A stretch of DNA of 62,735 nt from Aplysia californica. Its lineage: Eukaryota. The stretch spans positions 1,040,454-1,103,188 of the forward strand of contig NW_004797304.1 in assembly GCF_000002075.1 (NCBI RefSeq). The letters are read 5' to 3'. This document shows, in pieces, positions 9,930 to 33,909 of this stretch. The translations under genes and the position numbers were made by a program. The notes under the pieces are model-generated. The model had not been told where the DNA came from and searched no databases. It was given only the letters and a program-made list of their open reading frames with translations. Each line of letters opens with the position of its first letter. Position 1 is the first letter of the stretch.

Positions 9930-11578
9930 TACAATTACTTCCTGCACTGGTGAAGTGGTCAGTCAAAACAAGTTTACAAAATCATCAAAAAAATGTTTCA
10001 GTACTTGAATTACTTGAATGGAGAACTGGGGTCTTAGTTCCGAAGACGGGGTGCTCCATGCTTTCTCGCCCCTCTTCATGAGGGTCTATTTCAGTGTGGG
10101 CAGGCTGATTGTCTCCATCATCAGCTGGTTGTTGTAGCGTCTGATGGGGTCACGCAGCCTGCTCTTCTGACCTTCATCAAGCTGCACGCCTTTCGCAATC
10201 ACAACTAACTACCTTCGTGAAGGAGTCCTCGTCACGGCTGCTTGCTAGGTTTTCTCGGACAAGGGCTACTACAGTTGGAGGGTCAAGGGTAAGCACTCCC
10301 TCTATGTTTGCGGAGCCTGCTAGCTAATCTTCTCTTTCATATCCCTTGACACCAGCATGTCCTGGGCAGAAGATCCACAGCAAGCGTCTGATTTTGCTGT
10401 CTTGGGTTGTCTTAAACCAATCTGCAAAGAGGCTGCCGGTCAAGATCTCAGTGAGTCTGTAACAAAGGTAGCCTGTTGGTATCCATTTGTGCAAAGCCAT
10501 TCCAGAGCCTCAGTGATGGCATTAATCTCCATGCATATGATGCTTGATGTACTGAGGCCCGTTGCCCCAGATGCCTCCTGGACTGTTACTCCTTGGCAAG
10601 AAGCTGTGTAAGCCCAGCCCGATTTGATCCCACACTGAACTGAGCCATCAGCGAAGATAATGGTTTCATCCTCTGTGCGGTTCTCTTCAATTAGAGTCTG
10701 GATTTCCGCATGTGTTGCTCCTTCAGGCCATTCACGATATTCACGCCCTAATGTACCAATCACCTGAGTGAATATGTCTTTCACGTAGTGCGCAAGCTGT
10801 ACCCATCTGTACTCGTCTGATTGACCCCACAGTGAGACCACACTCTTCAATGGTCTTCACTGCCTGGGTCATCAACTCCGTTCCCCGTTTAAGTCTTGGG
10901 TTAGTCTGACGACCTACTTTGTCACGAAGAGGATTATGTGGATCTGCGAGGACTTTCAGATAAGCTTTGACCTGTGCGAGCTTTGTCTTTCGTTCATGCC
11001 GGGTAGGCCTAGCACATATCACATTGCAGCAGCTGAGGTATCTTTTGTGCAACCGAGTATGGCTCTCATTCCTTCGTTCTGGATCACGTCCAGCCTTGTA
11101 AGTTGCGTCTTGGACAGAGTCAGCAGACCAAAACCATAATCTACCTGAGACAAAACATGCATGTCAAAGAGCAAGACCAAATTTCTCTGCCGCATCCAGT
11201 TTCTCGCCATCACCTTCACTGAATTCAGCCCTTTTCTGGCCTTTGTGACGATTTTCGATATGTGCACCACTCAAAATCCTGTCCAAACACTATTCCAAGG
11301 AAGCGCAGTGTTTCTTCTCTTTGGATTGTCTGGCCTTTGATGTAGACATCTGGCATCTGGGCTTTCACTGCTTGATTTCCTGGAGGGATTTTGCCTTTAT
11401 TTGCTTCACACCATGCTCCAATCCTATTAAGCTCTTTCTGTATACTGCTGGTAATCATTTGTCTGTCTTTCCCTGTGCGGTATGCGAGACCGTCATCCGC
11501 AAAGCTTAGTGTCCCGCCAGGGCCTTCCAATTGGCTAGAAGTGATTCCTACTGTATACATGTTGAACAAAACAGTTTC
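9930..11578 (-). mobile_element. 5'-truncated, frameshifted non-LTR retrotransposon (LINE) with RT C-terminal half and RNase H (I/Nimb/Ingi-like group)
   Basis: Broken ORFs carry 'VLFNMYT...SFADD' and 'LRFLGIVF' (RT), 'RLDVIQNEGMRAILGC', and the RNase H motifs 'IIFADGSV', 'MEINAITEALEWL', 'TFVTDS' and 'WIFCPGHAG' (~10352-10378). Multiple frameshifts. Located in a TBC1D25 intron. Confidence 0.88.
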
Positions 11579-27859: not shown

Positions 27860-30800
27860 ATGGCTTTTGAGTCTACATCTGAGACAGCTCTTGCTCAGGC
27901 TTTGATGCTAGAAACAGTTTGGTTGAAGCAAGAATATGTGGAAGAGGCAGAGGCAGCCTTCCAGCAGATGTCTTTACATGATGACAAAGCAGAAACAAAT
28001 GAGCAGGTGAGTTTTACTATTTTTCCTGTGGGCCCTCATATTCTTGTGGAAATACTCAATCTTTATTAATAATATTTTAGTATAAATTGATCTAATAAAG
28101 AAGTATCTTGGAGCAGTAACCTGTCTTGAATAAGACTTCGTCAGTTTTTTAGTATTCATCTTGATGTTTGAAATGTTCAGGCTGAAGGGCTAGAACTCAA
28201 ATGGCCGCCGGATCGGAAAAGCAAAAGTAAAAAGTGTGTTTTAAATGTTGAATGGATATCCCATTTTGTGGGGGGGAAATATATTTATGACGTATAAGTC
28301 CAGTCCCTTTGGTTCTGTAGAATTTGAATATGTGTGGCATTTTCTGTTCTTGCCTGCAAACCAAAGTGAGGTACAAACTCTCCCTTTTCCTTCCAATCAC
28401 ATTGGTCTAGTAGTGCATATTTATGTATGTCATTCACTGGCTTAAGGCATTTCCTGAAAAGCAGGTCCTGAATTTTGTTTTCCCATCTCTCATCAATAAA
28501 AACACAAGATCATGTTTGTAATGCAGTTTCCTGGGGACCAGGGGTAGATCCTGCTTTTTTTCTTTCAGACTTTGTAAAAATTTTAACCTGAACTTAGCAA
28601 CACTTCTTTGTGCTTATGTGCTTCTCTTTACTCAAACAATTGAACATGTTCATTAACATCACATATTTTTAAAAATGTTTTTGTGATTTTTTAAGATATA
28701 ATATTTATTCTGACTGGTTGTCATCTCTTTTCAGGACAAGTATGAAACTTCCCCTCTCCTCCTGGAACATGTCTGGCTCATGCAGCAGACGTACGAGAAT
28801 GCCGAGGCCTGGTGTCAGAAAGTTGCTGTTGGAACCGCAGATTTCAGTTCATTGAAGTTGGATCCCGTTCCTGGGACGCCTACCAAAGTAAGTGAACTGG
28901 TACTTGCACTACAAAATTGGGCTGATAGAGCCGTAAAACATGCAGACTGTAATTTTTATTCTAAAAGAAGATAATGCTTTCTTTCCTTTTTCCTTTTTAT
29001 GAAGTTTCTCTCTNNNNNNNNNNNNNNNNNNNNNNNNNNNNNNNNNNNNNNNNNNNNNNNNNNNNNNNNNNNNNNNNNNNNNNNNNNNNNNNNNNNNNNN
29101 NNNNNNNNNNNNNNNNNNNNNNNNNNNNNNNNNNNNNNNNNNNNNNNNNNNNNNNNNNNNNNNNNNNNNNNNNNNNNNNNNNNNNNNNNNNNNNNNNNNN
29201 NNNNNNNCCCTCTCTCCCTCACCCCCCCTCTCTCTCCTCTCTTTCTCTCTCAATGGGTTGTTTTCAGCGTGCTGTTCTAATGCCCTATATATAGAATATG
29301 TATGTACACATTAAAAATTGGAATCTGATTATTAAGAATGTACCGTTTTCGGTTTGTAAGTGCTGTTTCATGTGCTTGTGTACTGGATTTAATGAGGCAT
29401 AGTTATGACATTTTTCCTGTTTTTTAGATTTTGTTGTTGCATGCTACTTCTGGTTATTTATGACGATGTAAGAATATGGGATAATTCCTAACAAGCAAGG
29501 GTCTTGGCATATTGACACATTCTCTAAATGTTTTTGTTAAGATCTCCTCAGCTCCTACTCCGTGGGTGACCAGTTTTTGGGATATTGATGTCCTTGGACA
29601 TTACCAAGATACCTGTTAGCAGAATGTTTCCTGTAAAGCTTTAACCTATCACATCTTTTTTTCAAAGCTCCACCTTAGTGAAAAAGCTTCAATTTATTTT
29701 GCTCAGCACTTTGTAAAAACAGGAGTCATATTACTTGTTTACCATTGTATTGCACATTTAGGTTTGTATGCCTATGTATTTTGGACATCAGTTTTTTGGG
29801 GTTTTTTGTTTGTTTCAGCGTACACACATTCAGGATGACTTATCTAAATCCAAAAAGCTGAGAGCTGAGGGTAGTGCAGAGTCATGGGAGAAAAAGCTTC
29901 ATGAAGAGATGTCAACCTTGGGAAAGAGTGCGAAAAACATTCACAAGCATCTTGATGAATTTCAAAAGGTAATACCATGATGATGTTAGTTTTTTAGTTT
30001 AGTTTAGTTATAGTAAGGTTTTTACGGCATTCGCAAAACTGCATAAGGTCATATGAGCGCCAATGGGAGGATGTCAACAGAGAAGTCCAAACGGGGAATC
30101 AGGCTTACTCTGTTCACCTCTCTAGCCTCAACAGCACAAAGTCTGCTTCATCTGTCAAGGCACCCCGGAAATGGCAGTTCACAAGAGAGTGACAAAGATA
30201 CTAAAGAAGTAGAGGGAAAATGACGATAGTAAGAATGAGGACAGAAAAAGCAGCAGTTTCCCTTATGCTGTTCCGGCACAGTATGAGCATGACATTGATA
30301 AATCAGCCCATGTACAATTCTACTAGGCATAAGAACATGCTAATATTCCCCTATTCCCCCTTTGGGAATAGCCTAAAGATAACTTCAGTCAGTAGCACTG
30401 CCCTGGTGAGGAGGTTTAGTTTTTTAATATATCACTGTTACGTACAGGGGGTTTGAATTATGCTCAGGTGTTTAATGTCTAGATCCATTTCTCTATTGCC
30501 CCCTTGCTGTTTGTTTTTGTATTTAATTACAGGCATAAAGGATACTTGTGCTCCTACTTAGGCCACTGTTTGCAGGATCACATTGTGGAATGGCTAGGTT
30601 TAGTTGTTTTTTTATATGGTTTTTTTTTGGGGGGGGGGGGGTTGTTTTTGGTTGGGGGGGGGGGGTTGTTTTTGGTTGGGGGGGGGGGGGGGGTTCTTTG
30701 CACTGTCATAATTGGCATTGTCAGAGATTGTCTTAGTGATTTTGTTTGGGCGTAGTTTGTTTGCCTCTCCCATTTTGCTTTGGGGATCAAGTGCTGAATA

Positions 30801-33800
30801 TTTTTTGAAAAACAGTAAAATTATTCATCTTTAGTGTGTGTTTCTTGTGTAAATGAGACATTAGCTGTTGAAAAGCTGACATTGTAAATATGTTCTGAAT
30901 GTAAGAACCTTATATTTGAAGAAGTTATGCTGAATTAAGCTGGAATAGATTTACTGACATTTTTAGGGTGGATAATTGGGATCACTTTAGAGGTGATTTT
31001 GCAGAAGAAAAAAAATCCCTACTGCTATCTTTCCTTTCAATACTTTTTAATGCCTGGTATATTTAATTTCATCTAGGGTGGTTGGAGGGTGCCGCTGGTA
31101 GGTCCTACTTCTTTACATTTCCTTTGTTATTTCTGTCTTTCTTGTCTTCCTTTTCCCCAGCGCTAAATTACCATTATTTTGCCGATGTGCTTCTCTTCAC
31201 TCAAACAAACAAATAATTGTTTCCATGTTTTGTGTCATAGAATCTTTATTGTCAGACATTGAAACCTGTTCTTATTCCTTTCTCCTTTGTCAGACCCAAC
31301 AAAGAAAGGCCCAAGCCATCCAGGACACCGTGATGCGCTTGAATAATGCTATTGAAGCCTGTCAGAACCGACTGAGTGAAGAACTGTCCCAAAGCTCATC
31401 CCAGATTGCTTGGTTCAGAACACTTCTTCAGGACGTTGACTCTGTCATTTCTAAGACAAATGAGAATTTGCAAGGATCTAACTGGGGACAGAGCAAGCAT
31501 CTTGCCTCTTTCTGCCAAACTATGGCAGACCGAATGTCCAAGATTGACAGCAACTTAAATAAGTGCATTGAATCATGCAGTGGATTGCAAGCGGAGGTGC
31601 CCAAATCAGAAATAAATCGGATTGTTGGAGAGATTGGAAAGCTGTCTTTGTTTAAAAAGAAACAAGGGACTGAGAAGTTTGGACAGAAGCAGGAGTTGGT
31701 GTCAAAAATGCTGAAGGAGTTGATGAGGGACCGACATGAGCTGGATTTGGTTCGACCTTCTGATTCCTCTGATAGTAGTATGGAAGGAAATGTTAGTAGC
31801 TCGTTCTCCACTCCAGATTCTGACAGTGAGAAAGATTCAAACAAGAAAAAAGCTCAAAAGATGAAGAAGGATAAGAGGAGCAAGAACCTGCAGAAAAGTT
31901 CGACCCACCTATCTGTCACTGGAAACAGGAACAATAACAATGTGGCAACAACAACAAAATCTCAGTCAAAGCAAAACAAAAGACTCAAATCTGCTCCCAA
32001 TGGCCAAAAAATGAATGGAAACCAGGGGAGTGTGTCCACGCCAAAGAAGAGAAATGCACAAGGCTCCCAAAGCGCAGCGCAGAAAAAGCAAGACGTCTTC
32101 AAGTTCAAGGGGAGTTCCCAGGCCACCAAGTCCCCATTCTTTCATCAGCCTGGAATACTAGGGCCAAGACCAAATGCTTTTGGCCAGGGGGACTTGCCTC
32201 AGCACGGGTCTTTCAGGTTTCAAAATTTCAACAGTTTAGGCCAAGGTCCTCATTCTGTTGGGAATATAAGTGGCATCCACTCTTTGCCCGGGAGTGGATA
32301 CCCGCATCTGGCAGGTGCTGGGAACTTCAGCTTCTCTGGGTTGCAGCAAAATGTGGGCCTTGATGTTGGCTTACAGGGTCAGAGTATGAATTTTAGTATG
32401 TCTGAAGGTAGGGATTTTGATCGTGGGTATGGTAACCATCTGAAGCAGTCTAAACTTTTCCAGATGCAAGAAAATCAGGGCAGAGATTCAGGGTTTGGGT
32501 ATGCTTATGGTCATGGACTGTCGGGCCGGGCTGCGTTTGGCGGGAACGTGGAGCAACAGTTGAACGACATCGCCCAGAAGCTGCGTCAGATGCAGCTCGT
32601 GGCCACCCAGGACTACCAGCTTCAGCAGCTCATGCAGGAGACGCAGCGGCTCAAGCAGATCCTGGCCCAGAAGCAGCACCCGCAGCATCAGCACCGCGAC
32701 CACTTCCAGCAGCAGTTTCAGGTGCTGATCAACGCTTTCCTGCAGCAGCAGCAGATGCAGGCCCAGCAGCAGCCACAGCCCAAGATGGCCAAGTCCATGC
32801 CGTCCCACCAGCAGCGCATGTTCCACAACCGGCAGCACCACCTGCACCAGCAGCAGAAGAAGCAAAAGCAACAGCAAAATAAGTTTCAGGCTGTCAGGCA
32901 GGAGGTTCGGAGCAAGCAGGAGGCGACGCAGAATCAAATTCAGGGTCAGAGAAAAGGAGGAACAGTAGCCTCCGAGAAAAAAGGGAAGCAAGATTCTGCC
33001 ACTAACTCAGGTAGCGGGGTAAGGAGTGGGCCGAGAAAGCTGCCAAATAAAAATTCAAAACTTGTCAGAATCGGGATGTTCAACCCTTTTGCCCAGGGTG
33101 ACAAGCACCGCGCGAGTGTGAGCTCTATGGTCGTGCTGGAAGAGATCGGCTGCTTGGTGGTTGTGGACATCATCAACAGTTGTCTAAAGCTCTATGATGT
33201 CAGCGACGACGGTTCCTCTAGCAGTAGCCTCAACCATCGTCTAGTGACGCGACTCGAGCTACCCCGACCATACCACATGACACAGCTCGCCCCCGATAAG
33301 ATCGTCATCAGCCGAGCTGGGAACACCCTCAGTGTGGTCAAGGTCTCCAAGCGAAGGCTTGAATTTCTCCGCGACTTGAAGACCAATGCACAGTATTTTG
33401 GTCTGACCTACGTAGAGGAAGGCGTTGTTGCATGTGCAGCTTTCAAGGATGATAGAATTGACCTTGTCTGTATTCAAGATGATCTGATGGAAGTAGGAAT
33501 TCTGGTCAGTGATTGCAAAGGCCCTGAACTTGTTGCCAGTTTGGGGGCCACTAATAGTATTGTATTTGTTGAACGCACGCAAGATATTTGCATCCGTCTG
33601 GTGTGTGTCAGCACTGAAGGAACTCAGCTATTTGCGAATGACCTCGACTCTGAGCCAAGCGATGTGTGGAATGTGGCATGCATTGGAGATCGAATCGTCT
33701 GCAGCAGCAAACGTGACAATAAGCTGAAACTTTACTCGAGAAACGGGAATTTCCTGGCAGATCTGACCTCACCTGGAGGCACGCTGAAGAAACCATTTGC

Positions 33801-33909
33801 TCTGGCTTTCAGTGACTCTGGGAACTTGTATGTGGCGAATGATGGTGCATGGGATGAGGAGTTCAAGCACAATGTCACGACGGAAATTAATGTGTTTGGC
33901 TTTTCATGA
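27860..33909 (+). CDS. ~1021-aa protein: two EF-1-delta-like N-terminal motifs + coiled coil + low-complexity/Q-rich linker + C-terminal NHL-like six-bladed beta-propeller (TRIM-NHL-related, no RING/B-box)
   Basis: Coding exons 27860-28006 (49 aa), 28735-28887 (51 aa), 29819-29968 (50 aa) and 31294-33909 (871 aa + stop). All have pyrimidine-rich CAG acceptors and GT(A/G)A donors, and all introns are phase 0. An in-frame TGA at 27854-27856 sits just before the ATG. The C-terminus has NHL-type blades (LVVVDIINSCLKLYD; KLKLYSRNGNFL; LKKPFALAFSDSGNLYVAN). Confidence 0.85.
31294..33909 (+). CDS. Large terminal exon of the NHL-propeller gene (coiled coil, K/S-rich, G/N/F-rich and poly-Q segments, beta-propeller)
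   Basis: Uninterrupted 2.6-kb ORF. The true start is the acceptor tcctttgtcag|ACC at 31293/31294; the first 23 codons of the ORF-track entry are intronic. Confidence 0.93.
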   Translation, partial: TQQRKAQAIQDTVMRLNNAIEACQNRLSEELSQSSSQIAWFRTLLQDVDSVISKTNENLQGSNWGQSKHLASFCQTMADRMSKIDSNLNKCIESCSGLQAEVPKSEINRIVGEIGKLSLFKKKQGTEKFGQKQELVSKMLKELMRDRHELDLVRPSDSSDSSMEGNVSSSFSTPDSDSEKDSNKKKAQKMKKDKRSKNLQKSSTHLSVTGNRNNNNVATTTKSQSKQNKRLKSAPNGQKMNGNQGSVSTPKKRNAQGSQSAAQKKQDVFKFKGSSQATKSPFFHQPGILGPRPNAFGQGDLPQHGSFRFQNFNSLGQGPHSVGNISGIHSLPGSGYPHLAGAGNFSFSGLQQNVGLDVGLQGQSMNFSMSEGRDFDRGYGNHLKQSKLFQMQENQGRDSGFGYAYGHGLSGRAAFGGNVEQQLNDIAQKLRQMQLVATQDYQLQQLMQETQRLKQILAQKQHPQHQHRDHFQQQFQVLINAFLQQQQMQAQQQPQPKMAKSMPSHQQRMFHNRQHHLHQQQKKQKQQQNKFQAVRQEVRSKQEATQNQIQGQRKGGTVASEKKGKQDSATNSGSGVRSGPRKLPNKNSKLVRIGMFNPFAQGDKHRASVSSMVVLEEIGCLVVVDIINSCLKLYDVSDDGSSSSSLNHRLVTRLELPRPYHMTQLAPDKIVISRAGNTLSVVKVSKRRLEFLRDLKTNAQYFGLTYVEEGVVACAAFKDDRIDLVCIQDDLMEVGILVSDCKGPELVASLGATNSIVFVERTQDICIRLVCVSTEGTQLFANDLDSEPSDVWNVACIGDRIVCSSKRDNKLKLYSRNGNFLADLTSPGGTLKKPFALAFSDSGNLYVANDGAWDEEFKHNVTTEINVFGFS

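Follow-up and report, generated by a model that had tools for sequence, protein, structure and literature searches.

A four-exon gene on the forward strand of an Aplysia californica contig, at positions 27860-33909 of the 62,735-nucleotide stretch analysed here (the window), encodes a protein of 1021 amino acids with two short N-terminal motifs, a helical and disordered middle and a C-terminal beta-propeller (Table 1). All four exons are in phase 0 with GT-AG borders, and joined together they form one frame of 1021 codons closed by a single terminal stop. The coordinates and peptides of a first-pass annotation of this DNA were confirmed, its junctions corresponding to the exon starts 28735, 29819 and 31294, as was the in-frame TGA that it placed ahead of the ATG, which lies 6 nt upstream. 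Annotations of Lymnaea, Biomphalaria, Bulinus and Candidula show the same four-exon organisation, and the counterpart of exon 1 occupies the same position in the first three. Pfam and sequence searches were run exon by exon, and full-length work used database orthologues.

Table 1. Features of the gene, in window coordinates
Feature	Position	Strand	Content
Exon 1	27860..28006	+	ATG and motif copy 1 (core 27902-27970); GT donor
Exon 2	28735..28887	+	Phase 0-0; motif copy 2 (core 28756-28821)
Assembly gap (N)	29014..29207		Within intron 2 (28888-29818); touches no exon
Exon 3	29819..29968	+	Phase 0-0; basic linker and start of long helical, probable coiled-coil region
Exon 4, whole	31294..33909	+	Phase 0; GT-AG gene
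Exon 4, first part	31294..31743	+	Helices with conserved columns, probably a coiled coil; roughly model residues 151-300
Exon 4, disordered part	31744..32553	+	S/G/K/Q/N-rich, basic, pI 10.1, conserved short islands
Exon 4, Q-rich part	32554..32943	+	35% Q, conserved, helical, pI 10.8
Exon 4, C-terminus	33037..33909	+	Six-bladed NHL-type beta-propeller and stop codon

The junction between exons 2 and 3 (..PGTPTK followed by RTHIQD..) is uninterrupted both in the intron-free open reading frame P0005 and in the annotation of four orthologues. No coding sequence is therefore expected in the assembly gap of intron 2, though it may conceivably hide a lineage-specific extra exon.

Could exons 1 and 2 lie outside the NHL transcript, whether as a small gene of their own, as an untranslated leader or as a defunct remnant, with the NHL protein starting downstream? 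Such an artefact of the gene model would accommodate the annotated Candidula protein, which has one motif and shows a motif-1-like stretch upstream of its ATG, behind an in-frame stop. It would also accommodate the database entries P0001, P0004 and P0007, which start inside exon 4. These three entries, however, stem from genomic Logan contigs in which introns are present, and they are truncated because ORF callers cannot cross introns. The canonical splice sites and continuous frame of the four phase-0 exons, the identical exon plan annotated in three other snails and the conservation of the motif residues between Aplysia and panpulmonates all speak against an artefact, as does P0005, which runs from motif 2 into exon 3 and exon 4 without introns. 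Together they make it very improbable.

Two motifs related to the eEF1B-delta N-terminal helix

A single copy of E-T-V-W-L-x-Q-x2-[YF]-E-x-A-E-A-x-[FY] is present in exon 1 and another in exon 2, and the two align gap-free with one another as well as with seven orthologous copies. Five positions are invariant in all nine: the glutamate at W-3, the tryptophan itself, the glutamine at W+3 and the glutamates at W+7 and W+10. The copies are mutually 43-51% identical and reach 40-48% identity to lophotrochozoan delta motifs. In an AlphaFold2 model of the orthologue P0006, the two motifs coincide exactly with predicted helices, at low confidence. The arrangement is that of the eEF1B-delta helix (5JPO), with which the motif has in common the glutamate at W-3, the tryptophan, an aromatic residue at W+6, A-E at W+9/+10 and another aromatic at W+13.

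A profile was built solely from the nine copies, taken from the window gene and four snail orthologues. In a six-frame scan of the 927-Mb genome it found only three places at E<=10. Two are the window exons (exon 1, 58.2 bits, E 7e-13; exon 2, 64.3 bits, E 9e-15), and the third, the sole non-self match, is the start exon of eEF1B-delta (E 0.0026). The genome's only two EF1_GNE loci lie on contigs C169 and C591, and in the 49 kb around them the family HMM matches one ORF (27.4 bits, E 1.8e-7). It is the same start exon, which carries an ATG and lies, in the same orientation, 3.7 kb upstream of the eEF1B-delta gene; a strict motif regular expression applied near these loci missed this exon, which the HMM found. 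Like exon 1, the eEF1B-delta start exon consists of an ATG and the motif with a phase-0 donor.

The same relationship emerges from protein databases. A HMMER search over 1.84 billion proteins gave 57 matches at E<=1e-3, 11 of them with the Pfam EF1_GNE domain, and in these the motif match lies at the extreme N-terminus. Among them is Solemya P0061, and an 'elongation factor 1-delta-like' protein of Lineus (P0025, E 3.4e-6) is likewise retrieved, matched at residues 6-33. Aligned by hhalign, the family motif and eEF1B-delta N-termini match with 98.3% probability (E 1.9e-14) over 30 gapless columns, and family copy 2 pairs with eEF1B-delta residues 4-46 over 42 columns. The likeness runs both upstream of the tryptophan (P-L-L-x-E-x-V-W-L-x-Q-Q) and downstream into an L-A-G-T tail; the tail of copy 2 is closer to the eEF1B-delta start exon than that of copy 1. 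Judged by sequence, both motifs have a specific and significant relationship to the N-terminal helix of eEF1B-delta, as had been proposed in the first-pass annotation.

A helix this short could also have arisen by convergence or chance, as a generic amphipathic or TPR-like element unconnected with eEF1B-delta in evolution or function. The E-x-A-E-A-x-Y half does resemble TPR helices, and three TPR proteins appear as weak, repeat-summed matches. Searches with single exons were empty: neither exon 1 nor exon 2 gave a phmmer match among PDB sequences, the 5JPO peptide included, and Pfam on each exon (E<=10) reported neither EF1_GNE (PF00736) nor the central acidic region (PF10587). This reading is largely refuted, and very improbable, in the face of a unique non-self match genome-wide, the N-terminal placement of the matches in 11 EF1_GNE proteins, the gapless profile alignment, a similarity that extends to both sides of the tryptophan, and a shared exon phase and ATG-proximal position.

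Beyond the motif the two proteins part ways. In both it sits in a phase-0 exon, beside the start codon, and is followed by a helical region of oligomerisation type. The NHL gene has two copies where eEF1B-delta has one, and its protein ends in an NHL propeller, with no detectable leucine-zipper homology, central acidic region or EF1_GNE. Full-length comparison of the family with eEF1B-delta by hhalign finds no homology past the 42 motif columns, and the absence of a GEF domain after the motifs, claimed earlier, agrees with the lack of a Pfam match to one on any exon.

From helical middle to NHL propeller

The middle of the protein was examined in the full-length model of P0006, which was read for secondary structure only (mean pLDDT 39). 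Helices are predicted at residues 118-205, 217-242, 251-270 and 273-291 (pLDDT 40-59), the first spanning the counterpart of exon 3 in this low-confidence model. Residues 300-580 show no predicted secondary structure, and further helices (581-599, 604-649 and 662-694, low confidence) cover the Q-rich region. Since the full-length model is poor, a coiled coil is only indicated; the helices at 118-291 stay below pLDDT 60, and no sequence similarity between this region and TRIM coiled coils was detected. The basic regions hold KKRN and KKQ clusters.

The C-terminus is predicted with much greater certainty. AlphaFold2 folds it into a six-bladed propeller of 24 strands (pLDDT 92.1, pTM 0.91), for which Foldseek gives the NHL domains of TRIM2, TRIM71, Thin and Brat as best matches. 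In VIA-align NHL domains account for every one of the best 15 matches (Z 25.5-27.3, rmsd 2.5-3.0 A, about 250 residues), the closest structures being those of TRIM2/3/71, Brat and Thin. The family profile matches TRIM2 (E 3.6e-8), TRIM3 (6.2e-8), TRIM71 (1.9e-7) and Thin (8.6e-4), with matches to TRIM-NHL proteins falling in register in blades 5-6, and the nearest Atlas clusters are molluscan NHL (PF01436) clusters. The NHL-like propeller of the first-pass annotation is thus borne out by fold, structure searches and profile. The Pfam NHL model (PF01436) itself is reached by neither the window protein nor any of the eight family members, even at E<=10, which makes this a divergent NHL member. 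Matches to 2ymu and to WRAP-T 'WD40' were dismissed as blade-level scores summed over near-identical repeats, and one to ALKBH8_N as below threshold.

Does the propeller make the protein a TRIM-NHL derivative, as was suggested? The snail protein resembles TRIM2, TRIM3, TRIM71/LIN-41, Brat, Mei-P26 and Thin in its C-terminal six-bladed propeller with a helical region ahead of it. Unlike them it has no RING, B-box or filamin domain, and about 430 disordered residues are inserted between its helical region and its propeller. Pfam gave no RING match on the exons, and no frame of the 62.7-kb window contains a C3HC4 pattern; a B-box was found neither in the exon searches nor in the window nor in the orthologues, which begin at the same methionine as the window gene. 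With no remnant of either domain in the window or the orthologues, derivation from a TRIM protein is not supported, and only the propeller fold points there. Having no RING, B-box or GEF domain, the protein belongs neither with the TRIM proteins nor with eEF1B-delta. The NHL propellers of Brat and LIN-41 present a basic RNA-binding face. The snail propeller, in contrast, is acidic in all eight members (pI 5.2-6.3), so that RNA binding through it, another part of the original proposal, is doubtful and finds no support.

Predicted docking on eEF1B-gamma

The helix from which the motifs appear to derive has a defined partner. The eEF1B-gamma-binding helix of eEF1B-delta has been captured in PDB 5JPO, and hydrogen-deuterium exchange shows protection of residues 11-29 (PMC9458455, where this subunit, EEF1D, is named eEF1B-beta). 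Helix 14-28 of EEF1D binds EEF1G near its GSH site; binding is broken by EEF1D E22R or Y26E and by EEF1G R14E, and GSSG displaces EEF1D (bioRxiv 10.1101/2025.10.13.682107). Both sources agree with the first-pass annotation that the delta N-terminal peptide is an eEF1B-gamma binder. The equivalent of human E22 is the glutamate at W+10, invariant in 9/9 copies, and the R14-equivalent arginine is kept in the N-terminal exon of snail eEF1B-gamma, located near position 49805 of contig C3. The snail copies have Q or H at the position of human Y26 (W+14), with an aromatic instead at W+13, and lophotrochozoan eEF1B-delta itself shows the same shift. In window copy 2, W+12 is occupied by W and W+13 by C.

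By homology of this motif of about 30 residues, the NHL protein probably docks on eEF1B-gamma. Two delta docking helices are joined to an NHL propeller, and the protein therefore probably plugs a new module into the elongation-factor complex. It is predicted to dock on one or two eEF1B-gamma subunits, acting as a competitor of eEF1B-delta or becoming part of the complex, and docking would bring the NHL propeller and the basic disordered region to the elongation-factor machinery. By analogy with the human complex, docking might be sensitive to oxidised glutathione.

The helices could be truly delta-derived and yet serve another partner, such as the GST-like domain of valyl-tRNA synthetase or of a multisynthetase-complex scaffold, or a nuclear or transcriptional role. 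Vertebrate eEF1B-deltaL, with 4-5 extra motif copies in the extension specific to this isoform, is described as a heat-shock transcription factor in PMC6176097. The differences at the Y26 equivalent and the deviant tail of copy 2 could retune specificity, and the KKRN and KKQ clusters could be nuclear localisation signals. Against this, eEF1B-gamma binding is the only experimentally defined function of the helix, the key glutamate is invariant, the copies are as close to the local eEF1B-delta motif as to each other, and nothing points to any specific alternative partner. We regard such a switch of partner or role as unlikely. The reading that we favour, with moderate confidence, is that of a heterobranch gene whose product combines tandem delta docking helices, helical and disordered regions and an NHL propeller, and is predicted to dock on eEF1B-gamma.

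Distribution, origin and related chimeras

Members of the family were found only in heterobranch snails, the candidates of the wider search being swamped by low-complexity words. The family is, as found, restricted to heterobranchs and unannotated, as the first-pass annotation had anticipated. A paralogue search in the Aplysia genome gave one weak match (C42, E 0.008), which contains stop codons, and the gene is effectively single copy. A literature search linking EEF1G, EEF1D and the NHL domain found no paper. The motif exons most likely arose by exon shuffling, in which the eEF1B-delta start exon would have been duplicated onto an NHL gene and then duplicated again in tandem.

Fusions and multiplications of the helix also occur elsewhere. 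Vertebrate eEF1B-deltaL is likewise multi-copy, with 4-5 tandem copies per protein. These precede a complete eEF1B-delta (zipper, acidic region and GEF) and no NHL domain, and the protein belongs to vertebrates, not molluscs. The AKAP7-type 2H phosphoesterase chimera P0009, with the exon fragments P0015 and P0019, bears 1-2 copies N-terminal to an unrelated domain. Its tail, E-A-W-C-Q-K-V, is close to window copy 2 (57% identity over 35 residues), and its C-terminus is an AKAP7_NLS/2H phosphoesterase, not an NHL domain. The AKAP7-like gene of Aplysia (C206) has no motif exon within 20 kb upstream. P0010 and P0032 are multi-copy motif proteins without known domains. These cases suggest, tentatively, that the delta N-terminal helix could be a portable eEF1B-gamma docking module, moved and multiplied repeatedly (in the snail NHL gene, in P0009/P0015/P0019, in P0010/P0032 and in eEF1B-deltaL). 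If so, it would define an unrecognised class of clients recruited to, or competing within, the elongation-factor complex eEF1B. Since the human helix is displaced by oxidised glutathione, the docking of such clients might be redox-gated.

The eEF1B complex is abundant and conserved. Little is understood of its non-canonical partners, and a response of complex assembly to oxidised glutathione has recently been reported. The NHL protein offers a natural test case of whether the delta helix is a transferable docking peptide, and of whether further activities are drawn to eEF1B-gamma or vie for it. The finding also draws attention to the extra copies of this motif in vertebrate eEF1B-deltaL and to its fusion with a 2H phosphoesterase. 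For the snails themselves, with orthologues in Lymnaea and in the schistosome hosts Biomphalaria and Bulinus, it offers an initial clue to the function of a conserved gene that lacks annotation.

Exon structure of the gene

The four exons and encoded peptides proposed in the first-pass annotation are borne out. Joined in silico by script, the predicted exons form a single 1021-codon frame with one stop, which is terminal, and the in-frame TGA said to precede the ATG lies 6 nt upstream of it. The run of N falls within intron 2 and cuts no exon, so that frame continuity is not at stake; a lineage-specific extra exon inside it is conceivable, and nothing calls for one. The junction between exons 2 and 3 (…PGTPTK to RTHIQD…) is uninterrupted in four annotated orthologues and in P0005, a transcript-like, intron-free ORF spanning motif 2, exon 3 and part of exon 4, from a metagenomic/metatranscriptomic protein set presumably called without intron models. 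The matched proteins P0001, P0004 and P0007 lie on Logan contigs of genomic origin. Four exons in this same arrangement (motif 1, motif 2, linker, large exon) recur at the orthologue loci, and an artefact of the Aplysia gene model appears highly improbable.

Features of the NHL gene and of the surrounding window
Feature	Position	Strand	Remarks
Exon 1	27860-28006	+	phase 0, GT-AG border, one motif copy
Exon 2	28735-28887	+	phase 0, GT-AG borders, one motif copy
Exon 3	29819-29968	+	phase 0, GT-AG borders
Exon 4	31294-33909	+	phase 0, GT-AG border
N run	29014-29207		inside intron 2 (28888-29818)
G/C-run simple tandem repeat	30504-30790		intron 3; strands translate as repeated GGGGLFLV / PPPPTKNN
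ORF with RNase H match	10443-10850	-	PF00075, sub-threshold (E 2.8e-4, 21.5 bits vs 25.8 cut-off); probably a retroelement fragment

Relationship of the motifs to eEF1B-delta

Exons 1 and 2 each encode E-T/H-V-W-L-x-Q-x2-[YV]-E-x-A-E-A; no gaps are needed to align the two copies. Counting from the motif Trp (W), the residues that never vary in the nine copies from Aplysia and four snail orthologues include E(W-3), W, Q(W+3), E(W+7) and E(W+10). We take W+10 and W+14 to be E22 and Y26 of human EEF1D, a numbering that agrees with the vertebrate sequences matched. The likeness to eEF1B-delta claimed at first pass is recovered concordantly by a targeted HMM, a genome scan, HMMER and hhalign, all with a profile built solely from NHL-family motif copies.

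The Aplysia genome has two EF1_GNE loci, one of which, on contig C169, is eEF1B-delta by its exons. Over 49 kb of six-frame sequence round both loci the motif HMM gave one match (27.4 bits, E 1.8e-7): an exon that starts at an ATG, lies on the same strand as the next eEF1B-delta exon and 3.7 kb 5' of it, reads M-A-N-P-L-A-L-E-N-V-W-L-Q-Q-Q-K-F-E-D-A… and ends in a phase-0 GT donor. A six-frame scan of the whole 927-Mb genome at E<=10 returned three matches, the two window exons and this start exon (27.6 bits, E 0.0026). Exhaustive HMMER over 1.84 billion representative proteins gave 57 matches at E<=1e-3, many of the short ones being start-exon ORFs of either family. Eleven of the 57 carry Pfam EF1_GNE. 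Two are P0025 of Lineus longissimus, named 'elongation factor 1-delta-like' (E 3.4e-6, residues 6-33), and P0061 of Solemya velum; the remaining nine belong to the long isoform of vertebrate eEF1B-delta, and the motif matches 4-5 stretches in each of them. P0012 and P0047 were rejected as tandem-repeat junk, and TPR proteins because their score arises from a repeated F-E-E-A-E-A-W-Y segment.

The profile comparison with eEF1B-delta N-termini proposed at first pass yields 98.3% probability in hhalign (E 1.9e-14, 30 gapless columns), with a delta alignment partly retrieved by the motif profile itself; when the full-length family is used, the alignment of copy 2 runs to 42 columns and takes in the L-A-G-T tail. 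Over 26 core residues, the copies share 40-48% identity with lophotrochozoan delta motifs and 43-51% with one another, vs 21-39% with vertebrate delta. Since the copies are about as near to lophotrochozoan delta as to each other, with vertebrate delta further off, convergence or chance deserves very little credence, and the comparison argues for descent from a molluscan eEF1B-delta start exon. The common ATG-proximal position and phase-0 exon would make exon duplication a simple route.

The Aplysia start exon itself (L006:799-906 (-), G000:C169 about 1121598-1121705) has Asn at the E22-equivalent (…F-E-D-A-N-S-L-Y…), a position held by Glu in all other deltas and all NHL-family copies; the close relative P0036 reads A-E there. 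The Asn may reflect either a genuine substitution or a mistake in the assembly.

The motif also occurs elsewhere. P0009 (318 aa), P0015 and P0019 represent a second chimera, which joins one or two copies to a 2H phosphoesterase domain of the AKAP7 type (PF10469, E 3e-42); the E-A-W-C-Q-K-V tail of these copies has its nearest counterpart in window copy 2, and no motif was found within 20 kb upstream of the orthologous Aplysia phosphoesterase gene (G000:C206:864119-868625). The vertebrate long isoforms (P0017, P0021, P0024, P0026, P0030, P0033, P0034, P0038, P0059) bear, in an isoform-specific N-terminal extension, 4-5 extra spaced copies before the canonical eEF1B-gamma-binding motif, a repetition for which a limited literature search found no description. 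P0010 (173 aa), P0032 (271 aa) and P0048 (141 aa) have two or three copies and no Pfam domain, P0032 with A-F or A-L in place of A-E.

A divergent propeller in heterobranch snails

The C-terminal 290 residues fold confidently (pLDDT 92.1, pTM 0.91) into 24 strands, and thus six blades. As claimed at first pass, the propeller is NHL-like: Foldseek ranks the NHL domains of TRIM2, TRIM71, Thin, Brat and Mei-P26 highest, NHL domains of TRIM-NHL proteins take all of the first 15 places in VIA-align (Z 25.5-27.3, rmsd 2.5-3.0 Å, ~250 residues, 13-18% identity) with other six-bladed propellers next (Z 24-25), and the family profile matches TRIM2, TRIM3 and TRIM71 in register (4e-8 to 2e-7). The nearest Atlas clusters are molluscan and carry PF01436. 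No family member reaches the Pfam NHL model, so the modelled C-terminus is a divergent NHL propeller. The description of the protein as a chimeric TRIM-NHL derivative holds for the propeller but not beyond it, as no RING, B-box or filamin domain was found in the gene and the product is therefore not a TRIM. Nor is it an eEF1B-delta, since no acidic region, zipper homology to delta or, as first noted, EF1_GNE domain was found. The NHL domains of Brat and LIN-41 have a basic RNA-binding face; propeller pI is 5.2-6.3 in 8/8 members, and this acidity does not favour such a face here.

Between motifs and propeller, the region after the motifs is helical in a low-confidence model of the full-length orthologue P0006, a disordered S/G/K/Q/N-rich stretch is basic (pI 10.1) and contains conserved islands, and a conserved region with 35% Gln is predicted to be helical. 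In window 31744-32553 the islands invariant in five snails (alignment A3) include K-K-R-N-A-Q-G … Q-K-K-Q-[DE]-L-F-K-F-K-G … P-F-x-H-Q-P-G-L-L-G-P-R-P-N, and have the appearance less of filler than of short linear motifs or a nuclear localisation signal.

A search with the C-terminal portion of exon 4 brought up eight proteins, none with a recorded Pfam domain and each either without a name or labelled 'hypothetical'. Four of them come from Candidula unifasciata, Lymnaea stagnalis, Biomphalaria glabrata and Bulinus truncatus, which belong to the heterobranch groups Stylommatophora and Hygrophila; propeller identity is 49-56%. Lymnaea, Biomphalaria and Bulinus keep both motif copies; Candidula is annotated with one. 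Just 5' of its annotated ATG, directly after a TAG, lies an in-frame motif-1-like stretch (L013:5938-6030, …L-V-W-L-R-R-S-S-F-E-E-A-E-I-K-F…); it may be the remnant of a first copy that has decayed, or an upstream exon missing from the annotation. The Aplysia genome holds no close paralogue, and the exhaustive motif search found the combination with NHL nowhere outside the family's own cluster; together with the orthologue searches this points to a gene restricted to heterobranchs, within database coverage. The first pass knew of no description of this architecture, and a literature search found no paper joining EEF1G, EEF1D and an NHL domain.

Predicted docking on eEF1B-gamma

PDB 5JPO is reported to contain the eEF1B-gamma GST-like domain together with the short N-terminal delta peptide, and solely delta residues 11-29 gain HDX protection upon gamma binding (PMC9458455). 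EEF1D helix 14-28 adjoins the EEF1G glutathione site; EEF1D E22R or Y26E, or EEF1G R14E, strongly lowers binding, and oxidised glutathione displaces EEF1D (bioRxiv 10.1101/2025.10.13.682107). Glu occupies the E22-equivalent position in 9/9 copies, and an aromatic at W+13 with Q/H at W+14 is found in both snail copies and lophotrochozoan delta. The R14-equivalent Arg is kept in the N-terminal exon of snail eEF1B-gamma, and helices 18-29 and 64-78 of the low-confidence P0006 model fall exactly on the two motifs.

Could the motifs serve another partner, or a nuclear role? The long form eEF1B-deltaL suggests as much, and we consider this unlikely. We lean towards docking of the snail protein on eEF1B-gamma through its motifs, displacing delta or tethering the propeller. 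The two motifs could engage two gamma subunits simultaneously, and multimerisation via the helical region is possible, as with the zipper in delta. Displacement would leave complexes without the delta GEF; tethering would bring the propeller and the basic disordered region to eEF1B. What appears to be new is an NHL protein whose N-terminal module would be a docking motif derived from eEF1B-delta.
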